64,000 nucleotides of DNA, from positions 124,001-188,000 of IMG/VR virus record IMGVR_UViG_3300023179_000009; one strand, written 5' to 3'. This document shows, piece by piece, positions 2,081 to 59,708 of this stretch. Made by a program: the position numbers and the translations under genes. Each line of letters begins with the position of its first letter. Position 1 is the first letter of the stretch. The notes under the pieces were generated by a model that did not search any database, had not been told where the DNA came from, and worked only from the letters and a program-made list of their open reading frames with translations.

Positions 2081-5000
2081 GTGCTACAAGAACGCCAGCA
2101 ACTTTTAAAACTGTGTGTTTCCTCTTTGGAAAAAAAAGGTTTTTCCGAGGATCAGAGATACAAAGACAGGCTCAAGAGAGAATTGAAAGAAATAGATGCC
2201 CAAGGAGAGCATGAGTATCTATTAAATTTACAAAATCAATTTCAATCAAAGGGATTGATTTTGCCTTATAATCAACATAATCTTCTTGTTTATTATCTTT
2301 TAGATTTGTGTAAAGATTTTGATATTGAAAAAGAATATGCTTGGTATCAAGGTGAGTTTCCAGATATTGATATCGATTATTTAAAAGATGTTCGTGATTA
2401 CATTAAACGTACTTGGGCCGCAGAAAATTTTGGTCAAGATAAAATTTGCGAGATTGGAACATATGGAACAAGTGGTATTAAATCGGCCATTTTAGATATG
2501 GCACGAGTCCATGACGCTGAAAAAGATAGAATTCAGGCTATTACAACAAAGATGTCCGACAAGGACGAAGATGGGCATGATTTAGAGTGGGAAAAAGCTT
2601 TAGAGACATACCCGGAATTTAAATCTTATTGTGAAGATCACTCAGAAGTTGCCGATGCAGCCAAAGCATTATTAGACAGAATACGCACAGGGGGCGTTCA
2701 CGCTGGTGGCTTAATTGTTGCTGATCGTCGTTTAGATGGATTTGTTCCACTTGAAGTTAGAATGGTGAACAAAGAAAATCCAAATGGGGTTATTTGCTCG
2801 GCTTGGACAGAAGGTTTGAACCGTCAAGATCTTGGCCCTGTGGGTTTGATTAAATTTGACTTGTTGGTAATTAGCAATTTAATGCAAATAGCCTTGGCTT
2901 GTGACCTTATAAAAAAAAGACACAGTATTGAAAAAATATGCGCCGCACCTAATCAATGGGATTTCTCCGATTTAAATTATCTCAATGACCCAAAAGCATT
3001 GGCCATGGCAGACAAGGGTGATTTAAAATGTATTTTTCAATTTGATAGCGAAGGCATAAGGAATCTGGTTAAACGTGGTGGGGTTTCTAGTTTTGATGAT
3101 TTAGCAGCTTACTCAGCCATTTACCGCCCAGGGCCTTTAAATATGTCGATGGACGTTCATTATTGTAAAAGAAAAAGAGGCGAAGAGCCTTATGAAATTC
3201 ACCCTTTAATGCAAAAGTCTCTTGCTAAGACTTACGGAATTTTGGTTTTTCAAGAACAAGTTATGGACATCTTGCGTGTTGTTGGTGAAATCCCAGACAT
3301 GCACACAGAGAAGGTCCGAAAAGCTATCTCTAAAAAGAAAATTAAAGATTTTATAAAATACAAAGAAATGTTTATTAAAAATGGACAAAAAAATTTAGGA
3401 GAAAGCGAAGAATATGTTGAGAATTTGTGGAGTACTATAGAAAGTTTTGCAGAATATGGTTTTAATAAAACTTTGACCGAAGATACTATAATAGATTGTG
3501 TTGATGGCTCTAAACAAATTAAACACATAGGTGTTGGCGACAAGGTTTATTGCATAAACGAAAAAGGAGAACGAGCAGAAACAGAAGTTGTAGCAGTTCA
3601 CGATCATGGCGTAATTGATGTTGTTGAAGTCACATTTGATGACGGGTACTCGGTGAAATGCACATTAGATCATAAATTTTTAACCGAAGAAGGGCAAATT
3701 CCACTTTGGAAAATTATTCAAGATAATTTGGTTGTGCTTAGTTCTCCGTTGGGAGAACAAAATGCCACAGAGAAAAAATTGGGAAGCAATTTGCGGAGAG
3801 ATTCTCGGCAACAGAAAAAAAATTATAGAACATCGCAAGAATTGTACAAAATGCAGAGAGATGTATTTGCAAAAGAGAACAGAAAAATACAATCACAAAT
3901 CTCATTGCGGAAAGAAATTTCCAACAAAACACAAACTAGCAGATCACTTGAAAGAATGTCAGGACTGTATTTATTTGAAATGGCGAGAGACAGGAAAGAA
4001 ACACATATCTCGATGCGGGATAGAATTTTTGAGATACAGTTTGTTGGCGGAACACCATCGTCATTGTGCGAAATGCACGGAAATAAAAAAAGAGAACATT
4101 CAAAATCGGATGGACAAGTTAAACAAAGACAACCTGTCTCCAGATCGCAAGGCTATATTTTCTGCAACTGCCAAGAAAACTTCGGCAAGGAAAGATGTTC
4201 AAGAAGCAAGATCTGCACAATTAAAAAGATGGAGGGACAACAACCCAGAAGAGTTTGCGAGATCTATAGAAAAGGCACAACATGCTCCCAAAAAATCAAA
4301 AATGGAAACGTGGTTGAGAAAATATCTGGGATGGAAGCCGAAGAAAATATGTTGTGGGAAAGACAGGAAATTTGTGGATTTAGTAAAGAAAAATATTTGG
4401 ATAGAGGTGGACGGACCGTTCCACTTTTGGCAGGTCGGATCAAAATCGAACAAAAGAGGTCACAATTTAAACTATGTTCAACTCAGAGACCAGATGCTCA
4501 AAGAGGAGTGTTTGAGGAGACAAGATATAATGCTTTTGAGATTGAGCATGACTTGTTTTCACAAAAAAACAGGAGAAATGAAGAAGGAAAGTTTGGATTT
4601 GTTCCAGACTATGCTCCGATCTCCAATACCGGGGATTTGGTGCATAGGAAAGTTCTACGAATTGTGCCCGTGGGCAAAAGACAATGTTACGATCTTGAAG
4701 TTGCTGTAAGCACACATAACTTTATTTTGCCAAATGGGGTTGTCACATCGAATAGCCACTCTTATGCATACACTTATATATCGGCAAGGCTTCTTTGGCT
4801 AAAGGCGCATTATCCTCTTGAGTTCTACGCTGCTATTTTGATGTGTGAAACCGATACGGATAAAATAAAAGATTACAAGATCGATGCCGAGAAGCATGGA
4901 ATTGAAGTTTTGCCTATTCATATAAATTATTCTAAAGAAAATTTTACTATTCACGATAACAAAATATATTTTGGTTTTTCCAATATTAAATCTATAGGAG

Positions 5001-6124
5001 AAGAAGTTGCAAAAAGAATAGTGACCAATCAGCCATATAAAAACGTAACAGACTTCCTTGATAGGTTCGGCACAGATTTAACTTGCATCAAAGCTCTTGT
5101 TTCTCTTGGTGTTTTTGGTGATAATCGTGTCAAGATTAGAAAATTTACAGAGTACTATAAGGGAAAAATAAACTCAAGAAAAGATAGAAAAAAAAGATTC
5201 GAGCAATCTTTAGAAAAAAAATTACAAGAATTAAAAGATTTGTTGTTGGAAGAAATTAATGAAAACGATCCTGATTTTCAATCTCTTTGCACATTTACAC
5301 CGGAATCTCAGTCTTTATGGGTGTCTCGATTTGAAAAAATTACAAGAGAAGTTGATTACAATTATCAAGGCAATAAAAGAAAAAAACAAGTTACTTTTTT
5401 AAAACAATTAGAAGATTTGGCAAAAAAAAGATCTAGTATAATTGAAAACTTTCATCTTAAAGAAAAAGAAGATGATGGTGTGGATTCTTATGAATTTTTT
5501 AATACTTCATCTATCAAAATAGACGATAAAGAAATTGATATCTTGAATGATGAGTTAATTATTGATGGCAAAAAGTTTTTTCCAAAAGCCGAATCTAATT
5601 ATTATGGTTTTCAATGGAAGCACATTTTAGAAACTTGTGATCAATACTCCGGAAAAACTATTGATAATTTTTTACAAGAAATTGAAAATCAAAACGACAA
5701 GTCCGGAGTTATACAAATTCAAGTTTTAGCCGTGAAGAAGAAAACCAGCAAAAGAGGCACAGATTTTTATAGCATGGAAGTTGAGGATGCAAACGGGAAA
5801 AAGGTTTTTGTCAATGTTTGGAAAGATGATTATCTAAGGTTTAAAGATAGGTTCGTATCTGGCGAGTTGTTGTCTATAAAAGTAACGCCGCCATCTGGTG
5901 GTTTTAGCACATTCACCTTCTGCTCTATTCCAAGACACAAACGCAAAGAAATTCCTGATAAGGAGTGTGACCAAAGATGTATTGTTCTTGAGCCTCCAAA
6001 ATTTGAAAATTTAAAGCCCGACACTGAAGAAAGAATCATGAAATTTAATACGGAGATTCTCAAGAAGCAATCTTCAAAAAACACCACAATTAAAACTGGT
6101 GGTTTTGAAATTTTTCAAAATTAA
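2081..6124 (+). CDS. dnaE: DNA polymerase III alpha subunit, lacking N-terminal PHP domain, intein-containing
   Basis: Catalytic FPDIDID, GVHAGG, GLIKFDLL, FQFDS, SAIYRPGP, YGILVFQEQVM, YGFNK|SHS, KAHYPLEFYAA and a C-terminal OB fold; GTG start with GGAG upstream. Confidence 0.93.
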   Translation: MLQERQQLLKLCVSSLEKKGFSEDQRYKDRLKRELKEIDAQGEHEYLLNLQNQFQSKGLILPYNQHNLLVYYLLDLCKDFDIEKEYAWYQGEFPDIDIDYLKDVRDYIKRTWAAENFGQDKICEIGTYGTSGIKSAILDMARVHDAEKDRIQAITTKMSDKDEDGHDLEWEKALETYPEFKSYCEDHSEVADAAKALLDRIRTGGVHAGGLIVADRRLDGFVPLEVRMVNKENPNGVICSAWTEGLNRQDLGPVGLIKFDLLVISNLMQIALACDLIKKRHSIEKICAAPNQWDFSDLNYLNDPKALAMADKGDLKCIFQFDSEGIRNLVKRGGVSSFDDLAAYSAIYRPGPLNMSMDVHYCKRKRGEEPYEIHPLMQKSLAKTYGILVFQEQVMDILRVVGEIPDMHTEKVRKAISKKKIKDFIKYKEMFIKNGQKNLGESEEYVENLWSTIESFAEYGFNKTLTEDTIIDCVDGSKQIKHIGVGDKVYCINEKGERAETEVVAVHDHGVIDVVEVTFDDGYSVKCTLDHKFLTEEGQIPLWKIIQDNLVVLSSPLGEQNATEKKLGSNLRRDSRQQKKNYRTSQELYKMQRDVFAKENRKIQSQISLRKEISNKTQTSRSLERMSGLYLFEMARDRKETHISMRDRIFEIQFVGGTPSSLCEMHGNKKREHSKSDGQVKQRQPVSRSQGYIFCNCQENFGKERCSRSKICTIKKMEGQQPRRVCEIYRKGTTCSQKIKNGNVVEKISGMEAEENMLWERQEICGFSKEKYLDRGGRTVPLLAGRIKIEQKRSQFKLCSTQRPDAQRGVFEETRYNAFEIEHDLFSQKNRRNEEGKFGFVPDYAPISNTGDLVHRKVLRIVPVGKRQCYDLEVAVSTHNFILPNGVVTSNSHSYAYTYISARLLWLKAHYPLEFYAAILMCETDTDKIKDYKIDAEKHGIEVLPIHINYSKENFTIHDNKIYFGFSNIKSIGEEVAKRIVTNQPYKNVTDFLDRFGTDLTCIKALVSLGVFGDNRVKIRKFTEYYKGKINSRKDRKKRFEQSLEKKLQELKDLLLEEINENDPDFQSLCTFTPESQSLWVSRFEKITREVDYNYQGNKRKKQVTFLKQLEDLAKKRSSIIENFHLKEKEDDGVDSYEFFNTSSIKIDDKEIDILNDELIIDGKKFFPKAESNYYGFQWKHILETCDQYSGKTIDNFLQEIENQNDKSGVIQIQVLAVKKKTSKRGTDFYSMEVEDANGKKVFVNVWKDDYLRFKDRFVSGELLSIKVTPPSGGFSTFTFCSIPRHKRKEIPDKECDQRCIVLEPPKFENLKPDTEERIMKFNTEILKKQSSKNTTIKTGGFEIFQN
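3470..4753 (+). mobile_element. Intein (428 aa) in DnaE with Thr at position 1 and an out-of-frame endonuclease gene inside
   Basis: Removing TLTEDT...VVTSN restores conserved YGFNKSH; block B VKCTLDHKFLT, block F CYDLEV, C-terminal SN plus Ser+1. Confidence 0.9.
3762..4709 (+). CDS. Vsr/DUF559-like homing endonuclease with N-terminal Cys/His zinc-binding repeats, nested in the +1 frame of the DnaE intein
   Basis: GGGAGA at 3751-3756 precedes ATG 3762; motifs SKMETWL, FVDLV, WIEVDGPFH, RDQML; HxxxCxxC repeats at N-terminus. Confidence 0.82.
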   Translation: MPQRKNWEAICGEILGNRKKIIEHRKNCTKCREMYLQKRTEKYNHKSHCGKKFPTKHKLADHLKECQDCIYLKWRETGKKHISRCGIEFLRYSLLAEHHRHCAKCTEIKKENIQNRMDKLNKDNLSPDRKAIFSATAKKTSARKDVQEARSAQLKRWRDNNPEEFARSIEKAQHAPKKSKMETWLRKYLGWKPKKICCGKDRKFVDLVKKNIWIEVDGPFHFWQVGSKSNKRGHNLNYVQLRDQMLKEECLRRQDIMLLRLSMTCFHKKTGEMKKESLDLFQTMLRSPIPGIWCIGKFYELCPWAKDNVTILKLL

Positions 6125-19315: not shown

Positions 19316-20096
19316 GAAAAATAAGTTAAAAATTTTAATATTGATGGTTTATTATAATAGACCTATTTTGGTAAAAAATGCTTTAAGAAGTATTATAAAA
19401 TGCAATAATCATCATCAAAATTGGGTTCTTTTCTTTGGCGACGACGGCAGTCCCAATCCAGGAAAACCAATAGCAGAGGAAATCCTAGCAGATTTTAAAA
19501 ATCAAATTATTTTTGCTAATTCAAACGCCTCCCCAGAACAAAAAATACAGGAAGGTTTGGCGATAGGCAAATATGCAAATCAAGCCATAAAAAACTCCGA
19601 TGCTGATTTGGTTGTGACTCTTTGTGATGACGATGAGTTTTATCCTAATTATTTTTATAATTTAAATAATTTTTTTTTAAAAAATCAAGAAGTTCTTTAT
19701 TGTTATTCAAATATTATAACGTATAATCCTTTGTTCCAAAAAAGTGAAGACTCGGATTTTTTGTCGCACAAATACAATCAATATAAAAATCCTATAAATC
19801 CAGTTGGAAAATTAGATGCAACTCAAGTCGCCTGGAGGTCCGATTGTTGTAAAAAATTTGATGCTTGGTTCGCAGAAACTACAAAATTTATACAAGGCAA
19901 ACCATTAATTAAAGACACAGATCGCTCTTTTTTTGAAAATTTATATGATAAATGTGGGTTATGTCACCCAACTCATTTTATTTCTCAATATAAAGGCATT
20001 CATGACTATCAATTGTTATGGCACAAGAATGCACACAAAGAATCTCTTTTATCTTATTACAATAATTGCCAAAGACTGGCTGGAGAACTATTTTGA
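19314..20096 (+). CDS. Glycosyltransferase family 2
   Basis: YYNRP, GDDGS, LCDDD (DxD) GT-A motifs. Confidence 0.8.
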
Positions 20097-21175
20097 AAAA
20101 CTTGTATGAAATCTTGGGTCTTGAAAAAAGTGCCTCAGAAGAAGATATTCGTAAGGCTTATCGTGATTTGGCAAAAAAATACCACCCTGATTTAAACCCT
20201 AACGATCCAGATGCAGCAGAAAATTTTAAACAAGTTTCTCGTGCTTTTGAAGTTTTAAGTAATAAAAATTCAAGATTTAATTATGACAACTATGGATCAA
20301 TTGAAGGAAATGATTTTTTTGAAAAACGCAAACCGTTTTCCTCGGCTTTTGAAGATATGTTTGCTCAATTTTTTAATAATAGACCTCAACAAGTTTCCAA
20401 AGGTGATGACATATTTTTGGAAGCCAACATAACATTAAATCAGGTTTTAAGTGGTGATGAAATAGATCTTTTTTATCAGAGAAAAAATATTTGTGATAAG
20501 TGCAATGGTTTTGGTGGTGATAGGATAAAGTGCAAACACTGTAACGGCACCGGTTCAAGAGTAATTCAGGGGAGAGCGATGACCGTTAGAACCGGCTGTC
20601 AAGCGTGCGGTGGCACCGGCAGCGTTATAGGTGAATCTTGTTCCAATTGTGAAGGAGGATACACCAACTCAGAGGAACAAAAAATAAAATTCAAAATTTT
20701 CCCTGGAGTAGACAATCGAATGAGATTTGTTCAAAAAGGTCTGGGAAACCCTCCAGTTGATTCTGATGGTGTTTTTGGCGATTTGTTTATATCAATAAAT
20801 GTGCAGAAGCATGAATATTTTGAAAGATTACCAAAAGGAGACATTTTAATAAATTGGCCTGTTGGATATTCTGAACTTGTTTTGGGAACTCAAATAGAAG
20901 TTCCTACGTTGGAAGGACGAGCCATGGTTGTTATTCCTCCAAAATCGAATCCGAATCAAAAGCTAAGACTGAGGAACTTGGGATTGCCCATATTTAATAC
21001 CAGTGACACTATATACCAACGTGGCGATCAATACGTTAACCTTTCGCTCTACACACCAAATGATTTGGGTGACAAAGAAAAAGAAATTTTTACTAAACTA
21101 ATGGAGTTAGAAAACTCTTGTTTAAATACAAATAGACAAGAAATTTTTAAAAAAATAGGAGAAAAAAATGGATGA
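20093..21175 (+). CDS. dnaJ: Chaperone DnaJ
   Basis: J-domain with HPD, CxxCxGxG repeats, C-terminal domain; TTG start at 20093 with GGAGA RBS. Confidence 0.93.
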
Positions 21176-35853: not shown

Positions 35854-35915
35854 TTATTCCATATTGACATTTTGAAAAAAATTATACAATACAACCAACT
35901 GTGGAGAAAAAACTA

Positions 35916-37511
35916 ATGTCCAATAGTAATATTTTTTCAACTAAAACCAAAAAAACTGGGTTTTCTACAAATACAAAAAACAATGCTGGAGGCGATGCTT
36001 ATGAATTTGATCCAAAACATTGTTTGGCTCAAATCGCTGCCACAAACACATTTAGTGGAACTTTTTATGCAACCGCAGAGCAAAATTTTAATTTAGCCAA
36101 AGAATCTGCATTGCGTTTGAAACACGACCCAGAATTCATTGCAAAAGTTGCAATTTATTCTCGTGATAAGTCCTACATGAAAGACATGCCTTGCTTCCTG
36201 ACGGTGTTGCTCTCGGATATTAGCAAGCCTTTGTTTCGCAAAGTTTTTCGTCGTGTGGTTGATAATGGGAAAATGCTTCGAAATGTTATTCAAATGGCTC
36301 GAAGTGGAGTTGTAACCGGAAAAAAAGTTAATGTATCGGCAGGAAGTTGGAGGCACGCCATACAAGAGTGGTTTAATACTCAAAGTTCTTCTAGTATTTT
36401 TAAAGCTTCTATAGGCAACAATCCAACCATGCACGACATTTTAAGAATGTCGCACCCAAAACCAAATTCAATTGAAAAACAATCTTTGTTCGCTTACCTC
36501 TCAGGCAAAGAATTCGATTTTGAAAAACTTCCAGATCAAGTTAAAAAACTTCAAGAATTTAAATCAGGCAAATCAAAAGATATCCCTGATGTCGATTTTA
36601 GATTTTTAGACTCTTTGAATCTTGGTCAAAAAGAGTGGGAAACAATCGCTATTCAATCTCCTTGGCAAATGACAAGGATGAATCTTTTAACTTTTGCTAG
36701 ACATAATGTTTTTGCAAATGAAGATGTTATTCAAATCGTGGCAAATAAATTAAAAGACAAAAAATTAATTAAAAAGTCTCGTGCGTTTCCATACCAATTA
36801 TTCGCTGCTTGGAGACAAGTTGAGAATCAAGTTAATTATTGGATACCTGAAATAATTAAATCATCACTCGAAGAGGCTATGGAAGTTGCCATCGACAATG
36901 TCCCAGAAATCCCTGGAAAGGGTCTGGTCTGTGTGGACTGCTCTGGATCCATGACTTCACCAATAACCGGTTTTAGAAACCACAGGAGTAACTCTAGTGT
37001 ATCTTGCAGCGACGTTGCTGGACTTTTAGCTTCAGCCATACATCGAAAAAACAAATCTGTTGAGGTTTGGACTTTTTCGGATAGTGCCAACATGGTTGAA
37101 TTAGACCTTAAAGACAATGTGCTAAAAAACACAGAAAAATTAAATCGTGCTGGCGGGGGAACCAATATATCGGCACCAATGCACCGTTTCAATTCAGACT
37201 TCAAAAACGCTGATTGGATTTTATATGTATCAGACTATGAGTCTTGGATTGACTCGCCATCTGCTGGTTACGGTTATAACTCAACGGGTCTGTCCTATGA
37301 ATGGGACATTTTTAAGAAAAGAAACAATCACGCTAAATTAATTTGTTGTGATTTGACCCCTAGAGATAACTCTCAAATTTCTGTTAGAAAAGATGTTCTT
37401 CAAGTCGGAGGATTCTCAGATCAAGTTTTTGATGTCGTTTCTTCTTTTGTTTCTCAATCTAAAAGCAAAGATTTTTGGGTTGAAGAAATAAATAAAATAT
37501 CTTTGGACTAA
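35916..37511 (+). CDS. Ro60/Rsr-like TROVE-vWA RNA-binding protein
   Basis: NNAGGDAY, GTFYA, KDMP, PWQMTRMNL, SRAFPYQLF, vWA VDCSGSM, GGTNIS, VSDYESW, VGGFSDQVF; GGAG RBS 9 nt before ATG. Confidence 0.92.
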   Translation: MSNSNIFSTKTKKTGFSTNTKNNAGGDAYEFDPKHCLAQIAATNTFSGTFYATAEQNFNLAKESALRLKHDPEFIAKVAIYSRDKSYMKDMPCFLTVLLSDISKPLFRKVFRRVVDNGKMLRNVIQMARSGVVTGKKVNVSAGSWRHAIQEWFNTQSSSSIFKASIGNNPTMHDILRMSHPKPNSIEKQSLFAYLSGKEFDFEKLPDQVKKLQEFKSGKSKDIPDVDFRFLDSLNLGQKEWETIAIQSPWQMTRMNLLTFARHNVFANEDVIQIVANKLKDKKLIKKSRAFPYQLFAAWRQVENQVNYWIPEIIKSSLEEAMEVAIDNVPEIPGKGLVCVDCSGSMTSPITGFRNHRSNSSVSCSDVAGLLASAIHRKNKSVEVWTFSDSANMVELDLKDNVLKNTEKLNRAGGGTNISAPMHRFNSDFKNADWILYVSDYESWIDSPSAGYGYNSTGLSYEWDIFKKRNNHAKLICCDLTPRDNSQISVRKDVLQVGGFSDQVFDVVSSFVSQSKSKDFWVEEINKISLD

Positions 37512-51004: not shown

Positions 51005-53236
51005 ATGTCTCCGCAGAACAAGAGTTGGGTAAATTTCGCCGGCCAGTCTATAGCAAAATTACTAAATGAAGATTTTGATCTCTCTGTTTTTTTGGATCAA
51101 TTTAGAAAGTGTTCTAAAAATTTAAAAATAGAGTTGGAGGATTCGTTTATAAAAGCAATTTTGCTCAAGCCCGACAAACCTTGGCCCTATTTTTTTTTGG
51201 CAGAGATAGCCGATAGTGTAGATGATAAATTATATCTTTATCGTGAATCGCTCAAGATCACCAAGACAGACTATGCCAAAAAAATGATAGAGAGTCTGTC
51301 TGATCTGAATTTTGTTAATTTGCCAAATAAAGATATAAGTTATGAGAAATTTCCTTTATGCAAGAACGTTTTATATTTTTCCCCAGAGGCACCAGATTTT
51401 GATTGCAGCAGCGGCGGTAATAGACTTTATGAAATTTTAAAAATACTAGCAGAGTCTGATTTTAATGTTTACTTTTTGTGCAATAATTCAAAAAATATTA
51501 AACATATAAATTGTTTAAAAGATTTGAAAATTAATTGTTTTGAGGCGGATTTTTCTAAAAGAATTTTCATTCAAGATTATATTAAACAATTTAAGGAAGA
51601 AGGTTTAGTTTTTGAAGTTGCTATTTTTTCTTGGTACGATTCGGCTCATCAATACTTTGATTTTGCAAAAGAACAATACCCTGACATAAAAACAATAATA
51701 GACACTGTTGATGTCCACTGGAAAAGAGAATTTAGAGGATTTGAAAAAGGATTTTTTCAACAAAAGCAGGTTATTGAAAGAAAAAATATTGAAATTGAGG
51801 TCTATTCCAAAGCAGATGTGTTGTTGGCTGTGACTCAAGAAGATAGTTTAGAATTAAAAAAAGAACTAGGAGAAGACGCCAATGTTAAGATATTATCTAA
51901 TATTCACAAATTAAAAAACAATGAAAAACTTGGGCAAGACATTGTTTTTATAGGTAATTATAATCACACTCCCAATGTTGATGCAGTAATTGATTGTATC
52001 GATATATTTCAACAATTCTCTAACACAGATTTTTATAAAAATCTTTCTTATAAACCCAAACTAAGAATAGCTGGTCCAAACTTAGAATTTGGTATTTTAG
52101 AAAAAGCACAAAATATTGAAGATATTGTGGTTGAAGGACACGTTCACAACTTAAATGATTTTTATAAAAATGCAAAAGTTCTAATGGCTCCTATAAATTG
52201 GGGAGCAGGAATTAAAGGAAAAATTTGCGACTCATGCATCAGAGGAGTTCCAGCTATAACCACGGATATTGGCAACGAAGGAATAAATTTAATAGATAAT
52301 GAAAGTGGTTTTGTTGCCAATACGAAAGATGAGTTTTTAGAAAAATTAAAAAATGTTTATTTAATGCCCTTAGATCAACTAAAAACAATAGCTAAAAATG
52401 GACAAAATTTAATTGATTCTTTAGTTTCTCCAAGTAAAGCCAAAAATGTTCTTGTGTCTAATCTAATCCCAAAAAACATAATAATAAGCATTGTTATGTT
52501 TAACAAATTAGACATAATAAAAAATTGTTTAAATTCAATACTAAAAAAAACACAATACTCAAATTATAAAATAGCACTGACCGACAATACCCTTAATCCA
52601 GATGTAGAGAATTATGTTTTGGATATTCAAAAATTACATAAAGAAAAAATAGTATATTTTAAAAATCAATCAAATGATTATTTTGTAGAATCTAATAACA
52701 AAATATTTAATCACCCAGATTTTATCTCATCAGATGTAGTTTTGATAAATGACGATATAGAAATAGTAAGTGAATGTTGGTTATCCTACCTGTACTCAGC
52801 CGCCTATTCCGAATACGATATTTGTGCTGTTGGGGGTAAGATACTCCACCCTGATAATAAAGTCGCTGAGTGCGGTTCCGAACTAAACAATCAAGGTTTT
52901 GGTGGCCACCATGGTTATGGGTTAGATCCAAATATAGACTTTTTAAATAAACGGAGATACGTAGGATATTGTTCTGGTTGTTTGTTGTACATGAGAAGAG
53001 ATGCTTTGGATATATTTGGCGTTTTCGATAAAGATTTTGCTCCTATGTACTTTGAAGATAGTGAGTGGCAATACCGGTGTCACATTGGAGGATACAAGAC
53101 AATTTATGAACCGAAGTGTGTGGCCATCCACCATGAAGAAAAGCAAGAAAATAAACCCATGAAGAAACATCAAGAAACAAACAGAAATAAATTTTTAGAA
53201 AAATATAAAGATATAGATATAGAAAAATATAATTAA
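51005..53236 (+). CDS. Bifunctional GT4 + GT2 glycosyltransferase
   Basis: SGGNRL, FIGNYNHTPNVDA, GAGIKGKI (GT4); LINDDIE, SGCLL, YFEDSEW (GT2). Confidence 0.88.
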   Translation: MSPQNKSWVNFAGQSIAKLLNEDFDLSVFLDQFRKCSKNLKIELEDSFIKAILLKPDKPWPYFFLAEIADSVDDKLYLYRESLKITKTDYAKKMIESLSDLNFVNLPNKDISYEKFPLCKNVLYFSPEAPDFDCSSGGNRLYEILKILAESDFNVYFLCNNSKNIKHINCLKDLKINCFEADFSKRIFIQDYIKQFKEEGLVFEVAIFSWYDSAHQYFDFAKEQYPDIKTIIDTVDVHWKREFRGFEKGFFQQKQVIERKNIEIEVYSKADVLLAVTQEDSLELKKELGEDANVKILSNIHKLKNNEKLGQDIVFIGNYNHTPNVDAVIDCIDIFQQFSNTDFYKNLSYKPKLRIAGPNLEFGILEKAQNIEDIVVEGHVHNLNDFYKNAKVLMAPINWGAGIKGKICDSCIRGVPAITTDIGNEGINLIDNESGFVANTKDEFLEKLKNVYLMPLDQLKTIAKNGQNLIDSLVSPSKAKNVLVSNLIPKNIIISIVMFNKLDIIKNCLNSILKKTQYSNYKIALTDNTLNPDVENYVLDIQKLHKEKIVYFKNQSNDYFVESNNKIFNHPDFISSDVVLINDDIEIVSECWLSYLYSAAYSEYDICAVGGKILHPDNKVAECGSELNNQGFGGHHGYGLDPNIDFLNKRRYVGYCSGCLLYMRRDALDIFGVFDKDFAPMYFEDSEWQYRCHIGGYKTIYEPKCVAIHHEEKQENKPMKKHQETNRNKFLEKYKDIDIEKYN

Positions 53237-53237
53237 T

Positions 53238-54518
53238 ATGAAATCTTGTATATTAACAACATTTTACAATCCAACAAAATCAAAGAATAAAATAAAAAAT
53301 TTTCATTCTTTTTATAATTCTTTAAAAAAACAAAAACTCAACGATTTGCTTTATGTTTGCGAAATTTCTCATGATGGACAATTTGAAATAAGTGATATAG
53401 ACAATTACTATCAAATAACCAACCCAGATTTTTTGTGGCACAAAGAATCAGCTATCAATTATCTTTTAACTAAAGTTAAAAATGATTTTGATGGAATAAT
53501 TTTAGCTGATTGTGATATAAAAATAGATAATAATAATTGGTATGATAAAACAAATTTTTTTTTAAATGATTATATTTGTTTGCAACCTTTTGAAAAAATA
53601 AATTACTTAAATTGGGACAAATCATTTGTAGAATACACAGATAGTTCTATTTTTAATTTTTTGAGTTCAAGTTCTATTGTTGATCGTGGTAATCCCGGCA
53701 CTCTAATAGCTTATAGAAGAGACTACTTAGAAACTGTCGGAGGTTTGTTTTCTAAATGTTTAATTGGGGGCGGAGACACCATTAACATAATTCCATTGTG
53801 TTATGATAAATTTTTTCAATTAAAATTTCTTGATAGAGTTTGTAAAGATATTAGATTTGAAATATTTGATTATTTTGATAAATGCTTGTTGGCTATTCAA
53901 AAATTAAATAAAAAAAATTATACTTTTTTAGAAAATATTAATATTTTTCATATGTTTCATGGATTAATTAAAAAAAGAAGTTATGAAGAAAGATACAAAA
54001 TAATAAACGATTTGAATTTCAATGATTATTTTTTAATAAATTTTGATGGATTTTTTAACATAATTAAAAATTCAAAAAATTTAAATCATCAAATTTTAGA
54101 TTTTTATAAATCTAGAGATGATGATTTTTTTGTAGAAAAAAATACCCCAATTATTGTTTCAACTTTAAACAAGTTAAAAAAAGAACAAGAAGGATCTTGG
54201 TTGTGTGGTTGTGATAGTTTTTATTTGTCTAATATTAAAAAAATAAAAATTAATTTAAATAAATGTCATTTAAGATTAAATTACTTTGAAGTTTATTTAA
54301 ATAATCAAAAATTTCTTTTTGATTTTAATAATCAAAAAGAAATAGAACTAGAATTTGAAGATCCTAAAACTATACAAATCAAATCCGACAGTTACGTTCC
54401 ATTTTTAATAAAAGAAAGTGAAGATATAAGAAATCTTTCTTTTCTTATAAAAGATATAAAAATACAAACTAGAAAAGATAACTCATACATAAATTATCCA
54501 TTGGAAGAAATTTTTTGA
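53238..54518 (+). CDS. GT-A glycosyltransferase-like protein with C-terminal beta domain
   Basis: LWHKESAIN, LADCDI, CLQPF, IGGGD, HMFHG. Confidence 0.65.
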   Translation: MKSCILTTFYNPTKSKNKIKNFHSFYNSLKKQKLNDLLYVCEISHDGQFEISDIDNYYQITNPDFLWHKESAINYLLTKVKNDFDGIILADCDIKIDNNNWYDKTNFFLNDYICLQPFEKINYLNWDKSFVEYTDSSIFNFLSSSSIVDRGNPGTLIAYRRDYLETVGGLFSKCLIGGGDTINIIPLCYDKFFQLKFLDRVCKDIRFEIFDYFDKCLLAIQKLNKKNYTFLENINIFHMFHGLIKKRSYEERYKIINDLNFNDYFLINFDGFFNIIKNSKNLNHQILDFYKSRDDDFFVEKNTPIIVSTLNKLKKEQEGSWLCGCDSFYLSNIKKIKINLNKCHLRLNYFEVYLNNQKFLFDFNNQKEIELEFEDPKTIQIKSDSYVPFLIKESEDIRNLSFLIKDIKIQTRKDNSYINYPLEEIF

Positions 54519-54521
54519 AAA

Positions 54522-55769
54522 ATGATTGGTAAATTAATATACGAAGCGGAGAAATTCTTAGACTCAACAGAAACTGGCCCCGAGTTAGTTGAAAAATATG
54601 CATCCACTATATGCACAGATTTACTTTTCTTGAATGAAAAATTAGTTCGCTCTATCGTTGACAAAATGAAACAAAATGTTATAGATTTTGCTGTAAAAAA
54701 TAGTAAATTGTATTTTAATTTTGATAATAGTAAAATTTACACAAGAGAAGATTTAAAGTTTAATGTAAATTGGCTTGTGCCACAATTAAAAAATGAAGTT
54801 GCAAATTTTAATACCAGCGGTAGCACATCGGGCAAACAATTTTTTTATTATGTTTGGAAAAAATATATTGATTTTATTGAAGACAAAAATCAATACGGTA
54901 TGATACTAGATGAATACGAAATAAATAGATCTATTGATAATAAATTGAATATTTTAATTCTAATCAACCTGCATTATAATCCAAAATTTAAAGATTTTTA
55001 TATTCAAGACGATAGTGGTCATCCTTACACCATGCATACTCATCAATCTTTGAAAAGCAATAGATTCTTTGTTAATTTTGAAAATTACTCGCATGAACCA
55101 GAGGAGTGGCACAGAAATTTATTTCAATTATTTGACACATTTAATTTTGACGTAATATTAATAAGTTCACCAATTTTACACAACATGGTTTACTATATTA
55201 AAAATTTTAATTATAAGAAAAAATTGTCAAAATTAATTAGCCAAACTGGGCAGTTTTTAATAGAAAGTGATAAAAATTTTTTATTGTCCAATAATTTTGT
55301 TGAAAATTTTTGCGATCATATGCGATGTTGGGACGGTGGCGCTACTTTTTTTAATTGCAAACATGGCAACTATCATTTAATGGACAATCTTAGCTTTGTT
55401 GAAAGTTTTGATAAAAAAATGATTTCAACCGATTATTTTTCTTTACCTTCTCCATTTATAAATTATTGGAATGGAGATCTTTGTCTGGTTTCAGACGATT
55501 ATAAAAGATGTGATTGTGGAAGATTATTTAGAGAATTTAAAATGTTAGAAAATAGACCTTTTGCATTAAAAGGCACCGAAAAGCTTACAAACATAAAAAA
55601 ACAAATAAGTAAATTAGATTTTAAATCTCAAATTAAACAAGTTCAGTTTGAAAATTTTAATGCTAAAATACATGTATCCAAAGATATGGATTGTGAACAA
55701 ATAAAATTATTAGAAGAAATATTAAAAGATTATAAAATAAACATTTATAAAATGGACTCAGAACAATGA
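54522..55769 (+). CDS. Phenylacetate-CoA-ligase/CapK-like adenylate-forming enzyme
   Basis: P-loop NTSGSTSG, QTGQ, STDYFSLPSPFINYWNGD, CDCGR. Confidence 0.7.
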   Translation: MIGKLIYEAEKFLDSTETGPELVEKYASTICTDLLFLNEKLVRSIVDKMKQNVIDFAVKNSKLYFNFDNSKIYTREDLKFNVNWLVPQLKNEVANFNTSGSTSGKQFFYYVWKKYIDFIEDKNQYGMILDEYEINRSIDNKLNILILINLHYNPKFKDFYIQDDSGHPYTMHTHQSLKSNRFFVNFENYSHEPEEWHRNLFQLFDTFNFDVILISSPILHNMVYYIKNFNYKKKLSKLISQTGQFLIESDKNFLLSNNFVENFCDHMRCWDGGATFFNCKHGNYHLMDNLSFVESFDKKMISTDYFSLPSPFINYWNGDLCLVSDDYKRCDCGRLFREFKMLENRPFALKGTEKLTNIKKQISKLDFKSQIKQVQFENFNAKIHVSKDMDCEQIKLLEEILKDYKINIYKMDSEQ

Positions 55770-55945
55770 CAGACTATGAAAGCAATGATGATTATTTTGA
55801 TCAAGACGGTCCTATATACAGTATTTTAGAAGACAAAGGTTGCTGTTGTCCCGATGAAACCGGCGACCGCTGCGGAAGTGACTGTTGTTGTTGCGGACTT
55901 GGCTTTGCCCCAATCGGCCCAGGTTGTGCATGTGCGCCAGCTTAA
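55766..55945 (+). CDS. 59-aa acidic-leader, Cys-rich peptide (not in ORF track)
   Basis: MTDYESNDDYFDQDGPIYSILEDKGCCCPDETGDRCGSDCCCCGLGFAPIGPGCACAPA; ATGA overlap with the upstream stop; fills an otherwise empty gap. Confidence 0.75.
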   Translation: MTDYESNDDYFDQDGPIYSILEDKGCCCPDETGDRCGSDCCCCGLGFAPIGPGCACAPA

Positions 55946-55977
55946 AAATTCTTAACAAAAATTGAAAGATTATAAAA

Positions 55978-56241
55978 ATGGAAATTGAAAAATTATCAAA
56001 AATAATTTACGCTTTGACACTAAGAGACAGGAAGGATAAACAAAGTTTTTGGTTTGAAAAAGGCTTTAGAAGAATGCACGAAATGGGAATAAACTTACTA
56101 GATTATTGGCAGAAGAAAATACAGTCCAACCCAGAATATTATGAAAAATTAGCTGAGGAAGTTTTTAAAAAATATGAATTTTTAGAAAACAACCCAGAAT
56201 TAAAAAATATTCCTAAACCACCAAAAAATTATGATAAATAA
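55978..56241 (+). CDS. Hypothetical protein
   Basis: 87-aa ORF. Confidence 0.65.
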   Translation: MEIEKLSKIIYALTLRDRKDKQSFWFEKGFRRMHEMGINLLDYWQKKIQSNPEYYEKLAEEVFKKYEFLENNPELKNIPKPPKNYDK

Positions 56242-56632
56242 TGCAAACATTTTAGATTGTTTAATTTTGCTTTCAAAAAATGTAGAATCCTTCAATTTAT
56301 TAAAAAAAGAATTTCCCGATATTCTAGCAGATTTGGTTAGTTTTCAAAATAACAATAACTGTAGTTGTAAAAATAAATTGATTAATTTTTTTATAGAAAA
56401 AATTAATAGTGATTCAAATTTTTTTGATAAATATATAAAAGATAATGATTTTTTTACAAAATTAGATAATTTATCAAAAGAAAAATTAGAAAAAAATTAC
56501 GCCGGTAGGGTTTTTGTTATTGAAAAAAATGAATCTTCTTGGAAACAATTTACTCAAAGTTTAGTTGGTAAAAATTTTAAAATGTTTAGTGTCGCAGAAA
56601 GAGAAGACACAGTAGCTGTTTATTTTTTATGA
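56231..56632 (+). CDS. Hypothetical protein with CxC motif
   Basis: NNCSCKNK; coupled to neighbours. Confidence 0.65.
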   Translation: MINNANILDCLILLSKNVESFNLLKKEFPDILADLVSFQNNNNCSCKNKLINFFIEKINSDSNFFDKYIKDNDFFTKLDNLSKEKLEKNYAGRVFVIEKNESSWKQFTQSLVGKNFKMFSVAEREDTVAVYFL

Positions 56633-56913
56633 TTTTTGTAATTTATCTAATGTCTACTTTGGGAATTTGCTACGCTTGGAGCGACACAGAGGTTAGTGTT
56701 CCTCTGAGAAATTATGTGGCCAGATTTCCTTTTCTAAGAAAGGTTTTACTTTGTCACGAGTGTTCTAGTTTTTGGATAAGTTTAGCAATTAGTTTTTTTA
56801 TTAATCCAGCAGAAGGGTATTGTTTTCCGATAATAAGTAATTTTTTAAGCGCTTTTTGTGGATTTTTTATTAATTTATTTTTTGTTAGAAACAATAAAAT
56901 ACCTTCTAATTAG
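56629..56913 (+). CDS. Small membrane protein with CxxC (DUF1360-like)
   Basis: LRNYV...LLCHECSSFWISL; family recalled, not searched. Confidence 0.55.
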   Translation: MIFVIYLMSTLGICYAWSDTEVSVPLRNYVARFPFLRKVLLCHECSSFWISLAISFFINPAEGYCFPIISNFLSAFCGFFINLFFVRNNKIPSN

Positions 56914-58005: not shown

Positions 58006-59496
58006 CTATTTCCAACTTATTGGCTCGCTGCTCTTTTTACGTTTTGTTCCCTTTTTGTTGCAAGCAGATAGAGTTGGCCTACATGCCGGATAACTTCTTT
58101 CGGCTCCCTTGCCTGTTTTTTTTCTTCCACATGGTACCAAATGACCTTTACGGCTTTTTTTACAATCTATCCAGCCCTTTCCATTATTTCTATCAAACCA
58201 CCCTTTAAGTCCACGTTCTTTTTCTAAATCAAATGCTCCTTCTCTGAAGTCTTCAGGTTTTACGGTTCCCTTCGCCACAGATCGTATTCTTGCTGCGAAC
58301 AACCCTGGCCCCACACCCTCAGGTATTTGTTTTCCTAAAGATTGCATTGATTGAATTATTTGTTCGCTAGACATTTGAGATACATCCATGCCTTGATACA
58401 TTAAAGCCATAGCAACGCTCATGGCATCACTGTATTGCTTTGGTTCTTTTAGTTTTTCATCAAGATGAAAAACTTGTTCTTGCATGTGCTTTTTTTTCTT
58501 TTTAGAATTGCCCCAATTTTTAGCACCAACTTTGCGGCACTTTACAAGTGCCCCCGAGTTGCCAGTTATAGTAATCAGCCCGTTGCCATCCGTTTCCTGC
58601 ATCATGACCCAAGTGCCGTTCTCTGTTTGAGGACACCAAACATCCGCTTTTCTTTTTTCTATTAATTTAAAATTTTCTAAATGTTTGGTGCCATTATAAG
58701 CAACATAATGGCAACCATAAACGTTGGTAGTTTTGTGTTTTTTAAATGTTACCAATCCCTTATTTAGAAAAGCAGATATTAGGAATGCATCCCTGTGATT
58801 TATATCTTTTTGTTTAAATCCGAAAGATTGTTTTCCATGTGGTGAACCATACATGTACTCATGATTACTCTCATTCTTCTGCACAGTTAATCTTTGTGTT
58901 TTGATTTGATTTCCATCATAAACTATGGCACTATAAAGCCAACTTTCACGTTGCTCTGGCGAGCAATTCAAAAGATACTCAATCCAATTTGTTTGATATT
59001 TATAAATTTTATCTAAGCTGATTGGATTACCCCCATGGTATTTTGAACTTATGACCAACGCTCTGTTGCTCCCAGATCCCGATACAATTTCTTCAGTTGT
59101 TAACAACCTCATATCATTTACAAGGTCGGTGTGTCTTTTTCTTCCTCTGTTGCCTTTGCATTTAGGGTATTTTACAACCCATTTATGATTTGGGGTGCAT
59201 TCAAATTTCCAACCAGTATTGCCATTTTTAATCACATAAGTTTCAGCATCTTTGTAATTAAACAAATTTAATATTGGCTTAAACTCAAGGCTGTCTTTTT
59301 CAAGATTAAATGTTAGAATTTCTTCTCCAATTTGAAGCTGTTCGTGTGTCTTCCAGCCCTCTCTTGTAAGAGCTTTGGAAGTCTCTACCGGAACACAGGC
59401 ATAAGCTGAAGGCCAAACGGAATACCTGCTTTTTACCTTGTGATAACAAGCATCCTTTTCTTCATTTAACTCAAACCATTCTTTAAAACTTTTCAA
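58006..59496 (-). CDS. CTS-bearing phage hypothetical protein, intein-interrupted
   Basis: TTG start (MKSFKEWFELNEE) with AAGGTGG RBS; spliced extein DACYHKVKSRYSVWPSAYA|SGALVKCRK. Confidence 0.75.
   Translation of the reverse strand: MKSFKEWFELNEEKDACYHKVKSRYSVWPSAYACVPVETSKALTREGWKTHEQLQIGEEILTFNLEKDSLEFKPILNLFNYKDAETYVIKNGNTGWKFECTPNHKWVVKYPKCKGNRGRKRHTDLVNDMRLLTTEEIVSGSGSNRALVISSKYHGGNPISLDKIYKYQTNWIEYLLNCSPEQRESWLYSAIVYDGNQIKTQRLTVQKNESNHEYMYGSPHGKQSFGFKQKDINHRDAFLISAFLNKGLVTFKKHKTTNVYGCHYVAYNGTKHLENFKLIEKRKADVWCPQTENGTWVMMQETDGNGLITITGNSGALVKCRKVGAKNWGNSKKKKKHMQEQVFHLDEKLKEPKQYSDAMSVAMALMYQGMDVSQMSSEQIIQSMQSLGKQIPEGVGPGLFAARIRSVAKGTVKPEDFREGAFDLEKERGLKGWFDRNNGKGWIDCKKSRKGHLVPCGRKKTGKGAERSYPACRPTLSACNKKGTKRKKSSEPISWK
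58558..59397 (-). mobile_element. Intein (280 aa) with degenerate LAGLIDADG-like remnant
   Basis: Starts CVPVETSKALTREGW, block B CTPNHKW, EQRESWLYSAIVYDG, block F DVWCPQTENGTW, ends TGN plus Ser+1. Confidence 0.88.
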
Positions 59497-59708
59497 AATA
59501 CCCACCTTAAAAACAAAAATGCAAACAAAACTATTCCAACAATCATCAAAGTAGTTCCACCAAAAAACCAGAAGGCCAGGAGACCGAGTGCTATTATGGT
59601 AAAAGATTTTTGTTGCTTTGCCTTGTAGTCGAGATAAAGATATCTTCCTATAAAACAAGCACCAACAAGTAAAGATACGATTGCTGCTATTAAAAGATAG
59701 TTTTCCAT
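59493..59708 (-). CDS. Small membrane protein
   Basis: Two or three hydrophobic helices in 71 aa; overlaps the start of the downstream gene. Confidence 0.65.
   Translation of the reverse strand: MENYLLIAAIVSLLVGACFIGRYLYLDYKAKQQKSFTIIALGLLAFWFFGGTTLMIVGIVLFAFLFLRWVF

Follow-up and report, generated by a model that had tools for sequence, protein, structure and literature searches.

A tagged cysteine-rich mini-protein encoded beside a predicted PaaK-type ligase in a large phage genome

A 59-residue ORF encoding 10 cysteines in a 459-kb, AT-rich phage genome was found to be a real gene, the N-terminal tag of which places it in a family of mostly cysteine-rich proteins encoded beside a predicted PaaK-type adenylate-forming ligase in large aquatic phages. 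This association points to an undescribed form of tag-directed protein modification, rather than to a metallothionein or a classical RiPP, although the enzymatic step itself is inferred. No description of such a system was found in literature searches. The window analysed was a 64,000 nt stretch of this genome, within which the following features, all on the plus strand, are relevant:

51005..53236 (+), 743-aa glycosyltransferase, a GT1 and GT2 fusion, the first gene of the conserved block upstream of the ligase
53238..54518 (+), 426-aa protein of unknown family, immediately upstream of the ligase
54522..55769 (+), 415-aa adenylate-forming enzyme of the PaaK family (ANL superfamily), as judged by its predicted fold
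55766..55837 (+), N-terminal tag of the 59-aa protein (residues 1-24, ending DGPIYSILEDK)
55838..55945 (+), 35-aa, 10-Cys module (residues 25-59; CCCPDETG..CCCCG..APxGPxCxC) and the stop codon
55978..56241 (+), 87-aa protein with no Cys
56231..56632 (+), 133-aa soluble protein with a CxC motif (CSC)
56629..56913 (+), 94-aa membrane protein with a CxxC motif (CHEC)

The small gene and the upstream enzyme

The statements made about the sequence in the first-pass annotation all hold. The start codon of the 59-aa ORF at 55766-55945 shares the sequence ATGA with the TGA stop codon of the 415-aa ORF, the first 24 residues contain eight Asp or Glu and one Lys, and the remainder contains the 10 Cys. 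The GC content is 0.43-0.47 over the ORF, against 0.17-0.31 in the flanks; however, this rise results from the amino acid composition, as the GC1, GC2 and GC3 values in the core are 0.60, 0.80 and 0.40 and Cys codon usage matches that of the neighbouring genes, and hence it is not a sign of foreign DNA. An orthologue of 60 aa (P0121), which is 88% identical, retains all 10 Cys and differs by an in-frame 3 nt indel, 16 synonymous codons and six non-synonymous codons (dN 0.070, dS 1.07, dN/dS 0.065), indicating purifying selection, whilst the two ORFs that overlap the gene in other frames change heavily in this orthologue. The gene is called in four independent assemblies. A word-based protein search with the peptide found only this near orthologue, a search of the Protein Atlas gave no usable hit, and megablast and tblastn searches of a phage collection with the region and the ligase gave no match.

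That the genome is that of a phage is evident from the presence of Terminase_6N (E 2e-10) and a tail sheath (E 5.5e-17), the absence of Pox_A32 and a DNA polymerase III alpha of bacterial type; a search for an NCLDV capsid was uninformative, as its control was silent.

The first-pass annotation had proposed, from a motif, that the upstream gene encodes an adenylate-forming enzyme. The single protein has no Pfam hit at E 0.1, no relevant NCBIfam hit at E 1 and no PHROG or PDB sequence hit, but the proposal is supported by its predicted fold: the AF2 model (pLDDT 89.6, pTM 0.83) has the two-domain structure of PaaK-type ligases, and the top 37 Foldseek rows are all PaaK-family ligases (E 3.6e-15 to 2.6e-9), with matches including BT_0428 (4r1m, E 3.6e-15), ClxA (9s45), PaaK1 (2y27), AjiA1 and NatL2. 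The TM scores are about 0.5-0.56 over the full length, but sequence identity to solved members is only 10-16%. A profile of the family matches the ClxA sequence at E 0.0018, with a C-terminal GD...C-x-C-G-R region aligned to ClxA. The P-loop-like motif TSGSTSGK begins a stretch at residues 98-107 (TSGSTSGKQF), in which G100, S101 and G104 are invariant, and T98 and S99 nearly so, in 46 homologues. In total 284 homologues were found, some of them fused to GT47, GT2 or methyltransferase domains. Unlike the solved members, this enzyme is encoded by phages beside glycosyltransferases and tagged Cys-rich proteins.

The 743-aa glycosyltransferase matches Glyco_trans_1_4 (E 4.6e-12) and Glycos_transf_2 (E 2.9e-6), and the same gene order is found in relatives (loci L002-L005 and L057). 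The 426-aa protein has no Pfam, PHROG or NCBIfam hit; it keeps its position directly upstream of the ligase in ligase clade I, with homologues there in L002, L058, L061 and L062 as well as the window, to which tblastn adds L057 and L059. More generally, a GT2 glycosyltransferase usually precedes the ligase or is fused to it, lying directly upstream in 8 of 9 clade II loci and in L066.

The N-terminal tag and the cysteine module

The 59-aa protein is composed of two independent parts. Residues 1-24 belong to a family of N-terminal tags with the pattern hydrophobic-hydrophobic-[YF]-[SAV]-x-[LIV]-x(0-2)-K within the first ~30 residues, represented here by P-I-Y-S-I-L-E-D-K at residues 16-24. An HMM built from 14 tags of other phages found this ORF as its only hit among the 7089 six-frame ORFs of the 459-kb genome (E 3.1e-4, with the next at E 1.9). 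We found 29 tagged proteins in about 17 phage types, ranging from 59 to 2306 aa and mostly Cys-rich, all of which lie within about 4 kb of the ligase. An ATGA overlap with the ligase stop, as in the window, was recorded at L060, L071, L072, L073, L080 and L081, although L071 lacks a recognisable tag and its neighbour is a five-Laminin_G_3 protein. By comparison, a loose tag pattern hits 5 of about 780 other ORFs in the same loci, whilst an exact DNA pattern for DNN[DENK]GP[IV]YS was too strict and gave 0 hits in IMG/VR. In the complete 238-kb genome G005, a whole-genome scan found four GP[IV]YSxL tags, all directly after the ligase; these copies differ at synonymous sites, indicating that conservation is at the protein level. 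Two complete genomes without the ligase, of 192 and 230 kb, have none.

The 64-67% relatives, which at first seemed to lack the peptide, carry a tagged 89-91-aa Cys-rich protein (MVVFSALRK) convergent on the ligase. The tag variants follow the ligase tree, with B, C, D and E each monophyletic with 100% support and A ancestral in clade I, but the proteins which they head differ completely, one having Stig1 repeats (E 4e-31). Neither the tag Ser, which is Ala or Val in some variants, nor the spacing to the Lys, which varies from +4 to +7, is invariant.

Residues 25-59 form a small 10-Cys module which matches no described family but is reused by other phages. A profile search of 1.84 billion proteins found it at the C terminus of, or inside, seven unrelated proteins of 41-317 aa with all-Cys-rich matches, and a DNA pattern scan found it in 473-748-aa Thr/Ser-linker, multi-module Cys-rich proteins of phage contigs; it also recurs at the C terminus of a protein with a signal-peptide-like N terminus. 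In locus L022, its carrier is the second-to-last gene, followed by a 204-aa ORF, of a gene string that begins with a tape-measure-like gene. Together with a Trp/Gly module, this 35-aa sequence adds to the catalogue of very small Cys-rich folds. Of the 13 small Cys-bearing type A tagged proteins, 12 have an even Cys count, and where the first Cys of the module is missing an extra one lies just upstream; however, over all 27 Cys-bearing tagged proteins only 20 have even counts, some of these being truncated.

Possible roles of the tag, ligase and module

The reading which we consider somewhat more likely than not is that the peptide is a tagged client of a glycosyltransferase-ligase pair. We propose that the ligase recognises the tag and modifies it after translation, the simplest chemistry for this enzyme class being activation of a carboxylic acid as an acyl-adenylate followed by transfer to a nucleophile of the tag, for which the conserved Lys is the obvious candidate. 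LuxE acyl-protein synthetase, and other ANL enzymes that load a protein rather than CoA, may represent a precedent, although no sequence or family match to LuxE was obtained and the proposed acceptor here is an N-terminal tag on diverse proteins, not a dedicated reductase partner. The Cys module would then probably act as a disulfide-knotted binding or decoration unit on the virion or outside the cell; of the alternatives in the first-pass annotation, a disulfide-rich virion peptide is the closest for the core. Nevertheless, the peptide has no signal peptide, leaving disulfide formation unexplained, and a run of four adjacent Cys is unusual for disulfide-rich domains. A complex prediction of the ligase with the peptide gave no answer (score 0.17), and is not evidence either way. 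The link between peptide and enzyme suggested by that annotation is not peculiar to this locus, and the finding passed the test of co-occurrence with the ligase. The Thr/Ser-rich linkers and nearby glycosyltransferases resemble known virion glycosylation targets, as in mycobacteriophages (PMC12619734), and the tagged neighbours of the ligase in clade II are giant Stig1-repeat proteins, but neither virion location nor glycosylation has been shown for any member.

If the ligase does act on the tag, it would be a new use of the ANL/PaaK enzyme class, in which a portable 10-20-residue tag directs protein modification, and a new way for phages to equip or diversify surface proteins. A more elaborate version, which remains doubtful, is that a GT2 glycosyltransferase and the PaaK-type enzyme together recognise the tag and covalently modify its Lys, through an acyl, glycan-acid or isopeptide linkage, such that diverse Cys-rich adhesin-like modules, from 59-aa mini-proteins to 2300-aa giants, are anchored or decorated, with the CxC and CxxC gene pair supplying their oxidative folding.

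It is also possible, though less likely than the client reading, that the association reflects inherited synteny only, with the tag being an assembly, attachment or packaging signal for virion-associated Cys-rich proteins and the ligase acting solely with the neighbouring glycosyltransferases on a glycan. Adjacency and tag variants that track ligase clades are also what plain vertical inheritance of neighbouring genes would give. About a third of ligase loci, including the deep branches L084-L093, show no tagged neighbour, and therefore the ligase has, or can have, a tag-independent role, most simply in glycan synthesis; this accords with its fusion to, or position behind, glycosyltransferases and with the sugar-nucleotide enzymes that lie nearby. 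The L022 module protein lies in a tail gene string, and the large module proteins start with a tag-like IVYNDSISALSSGEC, yet their complete genome, G006, has no ligase. Against this, no GP[IV]YSxL tag was found in the two complete ligase-less genomes that were scanned, several paralogous tagged genes cluster at the ligase rather than in structural operons, and the tag is kept whilst the body is swapped completely.

The first-pass annotation also suggested a RiPP precursor, with a leader and a Cys-rich core, which describes the architecture but is only loosely right. Among type A members a conserved N terminus is joined to unrelated, hypervariable Cys-rich C-terminal parts, with two to four paralogues per locus, an enzyme gene is translationally coupled upstream, and a subtilisin-like S8 peptidase lies 3 kb downstream in locus L030. 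However, the same tag heads proteins of 277, 351, 811 and 1438-2306 aa, and the core in the window is a conserved domain rather than a hypervariable one. No YcaO, LanB/M, radical-SAM, ATP-grasp or RRE-type gene was detected by Pfam in the window genes scanned or in the precomputed Pfam calls of the relatives' loci, and Pfam, PHROG and NCBIfam scans of the neighbouring genes showed only glycosyltransferases, the ligase and an AAA ATPase. This reading is therefore unlikely, the evidence suggesting a protein-modification or protein-sorting logic.

The metallothionein or metal-handling alternative is slightly less well supported still. The module has 10 Cys in 35 residues, in CC, CCC, CCCC and CxC arrangements, the absence of a signal peptide implies that it is made in a reducing compartment, and nine Cys are invariant across the module family, a number that would fit an M3Cys9 cluster. 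Nevertheless, there is no metallothionein or other Pfam or NCBIfam match at E 0.1-1, non-Cys positions (P, E, T, G and A-P-x-G) are strongly conserved, aromatic residues are present in the core, the module is embedded in extracellular-type proteins, and Cys counts in the small tagged proteins are mostly even. That the ORF arose by chance in a GC-rich patch, as its short length and lack of a family match might suggest, is contradicted by the dN/dS, the in-frame indel, the conservation of the module in distant proteins and the significance of the tag against the whole genome.

Genes downstream of the tagged protein

The 87-aa gene, not mentioned in the first-pass annotation, is variable, being 94% identical in the near relatives L006-L008 and having one weak relative next to another module protein in locus L013 (directly after P0126; tblastn E 3e-5 to 3e-4 in a small database), as well as a weak hit to phrog_12630 (E 0.0046). 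The 133-aa and 94-aa genes that follow are a separately conserved pair. The 133-aa protein, found in 18 IMG/VR loci, has an invariant N-x-N-C-x-C motif, but its confident AF2 model (pLDDT 93.3) has no significant fold match (Foldseek E at least 0.88, best Z 4.6), resembling lanthipeptide dehydratase leader-binding regions only at noise level (Z 4.1). A thioredoxin-like structure is not supported, and a role as redox partner of the membrane protein remains speculation. The 94-aa protein does not appear to belong to DUF1360 (PF07098), which only 1 of 12 homologues touches, at E 0.11; these homologues are 55-72% identical, apart from one distant member (L052, 27%), and share an invariant L-C-x-x-C-x-S-F-W motif and a third invariant Cys. 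Its gene lies next to or near the 133-aa gene in 17 of the 18 loci, the eighteenth being cut off inside that gene, and in ligase-less phages the pair sits beside tail-fibre-like genes and other large Cys-rich proteins.

A small cysteine-rich gene and the adjoining ligase

The features around which the analysis centres, with the coordinates of the window, are:
54522-55769, 415-aa ORF encoding the predicted adenylate-forming enzyme, hereafter the ligase
55766-55945, 59-aa ORF containing 10 Cys
56231-56913, a pair of genes encoding a 133-aa protein with CSC and a 94-aa membrane protein with CHEC

The ATG of the 59-aa ORF overlaps the TGA stop codon of the ligase as ATGA, and an 87-aa gene is also found downstream, ahead of the 133-aa and 94-aa genes. 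The first 24 residues of the peptide include eight acidic residues and one basic residue. The GC content rises to 0.43-0.47 over this ORF, compared with 0.17-0.31 around it; however, GC at codon positions 1, 2 and 3 is 0.60, 0.80 and 0.40 in the Cys-rich half, and Cys codon usage matches that of the neighbouring genes. The peak therefore reflects Cys, Gly, Pro and Ala codons rather than foreign DNA.

The ORF is a real gene. A 60-aa orthologue (P0121, 88% identical) is annotated in four assemblies, in all of which the order of ligase, peptide, 87-aa, 133-aa and 94-aa genes is the same. In comparison with the near relative L006 (L006:1529-1711), the gene exhibits 16 synonymous and six non-synonymous codon differences, along with an in-frame 3 nt indel, giving a dN of 0.070, a dS of 1.07 and a dN/dS of 0.065, with every Cys retained. 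Nucleotide identity is only 83.6%, whilst the neighbouring genes are 90-97% identical with dS values of 0.10-0.56. Five of the six replacements require two or three base changes, and all six fall at positions that also vary across the wider family of related modules; this points to a local hotspot of divergence, or to an exchange of alleles.

The 415-aa protein alone has no match in Pfam, PHROGs, NCBIfam or the PDB sequences, but has 284 homologues, mostly on contigs of 100-460 kb. A structural model constructed using 46 homologues (pLDDT 89.6) matches PaaK-family adenylate-forming enzymes, the best being BT_0428 (E 3.6e-15), followed by ClxA, PaaK1, AjiA1 and NatL2. The family profile also reaches the ClxA sequence, with an E value of 0.0018, and both the TSGSTSGK motif and a GD...CxCGR region are conserved. 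The first-pass annotation of this protein as an adenylate-forming enzyme is correct by predicted fold, although the protein lies outside all curated sequence models.

Two separable halves of the peptide

An exhaustive profile search of 1.84 billion representative proteins found the 35-aa Cys-rich core in seven unrelated proteins of 41-317 aa with Cys-rich matches, in which it is located either internally or at the C terminus; one of these has an N terminus resembling a signal peptide. Nine Cys are invariant, as are P, E, T, G and A-P-x-G positions. A DNA pattern scan also identified the core in proteins of 473-748 aa encoded by phage contigs of 75-142 kb, where it lies between poly-Thr/Ser linkers amongst other small Cys-rich modules. 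In one such locus, L022, the gene carrying the module is the second-to-last (a 204-aa ORF follows) of a gene string beginning with a tape-measure-like gene. In the locus L013 (2220-3175), a 173-aa protein ending in the CCCPDETG module (P0126) is followed by a gene weakly similar to the 87-aa gene of the window (25% identity, E 3e-5 to 3e-4 in a small database), which may represent a second conserved neighbour of the module. The complete 141.8 kb genome G006 has the module but no ligase; therefore the module itself does not need the ligase.

By contrast, the N-terminal half is a tag tied to the ligase. In relatives with ligases only 39-49% identical to that of the window, the gene following the ligase again encodes a small Cys-rich protein, present in one to four copies per locus, that shares only its N terminus (M-x-Y-D-N-N-D-G-P-I-Y-S-x-L-x-G-K) with the window peptide. 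A scan of the complete 238 kb genome G005 found four such tags, all in the 3.3 kb after the ligase; these differ at synonymous sites, hence the conservation is at the protein level. Two complete genomes that have the 133-aa and 94-aa gene pair, but no ligase, have no tag. When an HMM of 14 tags from other phages was used to search the 7089 ORFs of the genome containing the window, the peptide was the only hit (E 3.1e-4; the runner-up had an E value of 1.9).

Widening the analysis to 38 ligase loci showed that the rule is general: the protein encoded beside the ligase starts with hydrophobic-hydrophobic-[YF]-[SAV]-x-[LIV]-x(0-2)-K, with the first Cys a few residues later. The body ranges from 59 aa to 2306 aa, examples being 267-403 Cys in Stig1-like repeats (E 4e-31). 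Relatives with 64-67% identity, which first appeared to be counter-examples, carry a tagged Cys-rich protein of 89-91 aa (MVVFSALRK) on the opposite strand, convergent on the ligase. A loose regular expression for the tag matched five of about 780 other ORFs in the same loci. On a maximum likelihood tree of the ligases, tag variants B, C, D and E are each monophyletic, and A is ancestral within clade I; however, the deepest, long-branched ligases have no tagged neighbour. In L058, a ligase locus without a recognisable tag, the gene immediately after the ligase (L058:8222-8401) is a 59-aa ORF with 12 Cys and a lipoprotein-like N terminus (MRTFFLILLLSLFCIGCK...).

Tag-like sequence is also found in large proteins bearing the Cys-rich module (L018/L022:2899-4317, L024:8928-10331 and P0128), which begin with MN..D.ELLRLYGVE.PNEI.VYNDSIS.LSSGEC, the second half of which resembles the type A tag (VYDNNDGPIYSVLSGGKC). 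Yet G006, which encodes a different large module protein (L017) with another N terminus, has no ligase, and none was evident in the partial record of L018. A second small module, roughly C-x-[YW]-x-W...G-G-x-W...C-x-x-x-C-x-C, appears by eye to recur both in small tagged proteins and in the large Thr/Ser-linker or Stig1-repeat proteins (L041:7784-7987, L042:5720-5944, L042:6798-7208, L028:8794-9144, L017, L021 and L072; also L002:6223-6492).

Neighbouring genes and a proposed role for the tag

A GT2 glycosyltransferase is encoded directly upstream of the ligase in eight of nine clade II loci and in the ligase locus L066, whilst in the clade of the window this position is held by a 426-aa protein. 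Fusions of the ligase to GT47, GT2 and methyltransferase domains exist, and sugar-nucleotide enzymes are encoded nearby. The conserved unit is therefore glycosyltransferase, ligase and tagged protein, the tag and ligase being genetically coupled across about 17 phage types. In one phage type, a 535-aa subtilisin-like S8 peptidase (L030:10516-12123) lies about 3 kb downstream of the ligase and tagged genes, and could either process the tags or be unrelated.

We infer that the ligase, probably together with the glycosyltransferase, recognises the tag and modifies it, with the conserved Lys being the most plausible acceptor for an acyl-adenylate, although prediction of a complex between the ligase and the peptide gave no answer. 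The Cys-rich module is likewise inferred to be disulfide-bonded, and to act outside the cell or on the virion, given that 12 of the 13 small Cys-bearing tagged proteins have an even number of Cys and that the protein contexts are of an extracellular type. The enzyme itself is a divergent member of the PaaK branch of the ANL superfamily, and no description of such a unit was found in three literature searches; that it constitutes a new tag-directed protein modification system can only be suggested tentatively. Of the alternatives raised in the first-pass annotation, the leader-like tag does recall the logic of RiPPs, but clients of up to 2306 aa, a conserved 'core' and the absence of RiPP enzymes among the genes scanned argue against this. 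Metallothionein membership fails on every point tested except Cys density.

The 133-aa and 94-aa genes are found next to, or near, one another in 17 of 18 IMG/VR loci (L035-L052), with the eighteenth being cut off; the motifs N-x-N-C-x-C, in the former, and L-C-x-x-C-x-S-F-W, in the latter, are invariant. The pair also occurs in phages without the ligase or tags: in five of the eight such loci it sits beside other large Cys-rich proteins, and in two of those five also beside tail-fibre-like genes. It is a candidate thiol-disulfide relay, although such a role is an idea rather than a result. The model of the 133-aa protein is confident (pLDDT 93.3), but matches no known fold.

The phage genome and its insertions

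The 458,813 bp record is that of a tailed phage, rather than a giant eukaryotic virus, having hits to Terminase_6N (E 2e-10) and a tail sheath (E 5.5e-17). Other features of note within the window are:
35901-37511 and 20066-21175, a Ro60/TROVE-vWA protein and a full DnaJ (J domain, CXXCXGXG, C-terminal domain)
58006-59658 (- strand), a 550-aa ORF with an intein-like insertion
38-2065 and 2081-6124, intein-type insertions, one an AAA protein with Hom_end_hint and a homing endonuclease, the other a bacterial-type DNA polymerase III alpha with an intein splicing domain

DnaJ/DnaK are a hallmark of the recently described large aquatic 'moraphages' with Bacteroidota hosts (PMC12619734), which may be related phages. 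The 550-aa ORF corresponds to proteins of 219-221 aa in L006 and in L057, another relative. Although no Hint domain was detected with Pfam, it looks to contain an intein: the insertion, of about 280 aa, begins with Cys directly after ...SVWPSAYA and ends ...TGN before SGALVKCRK.
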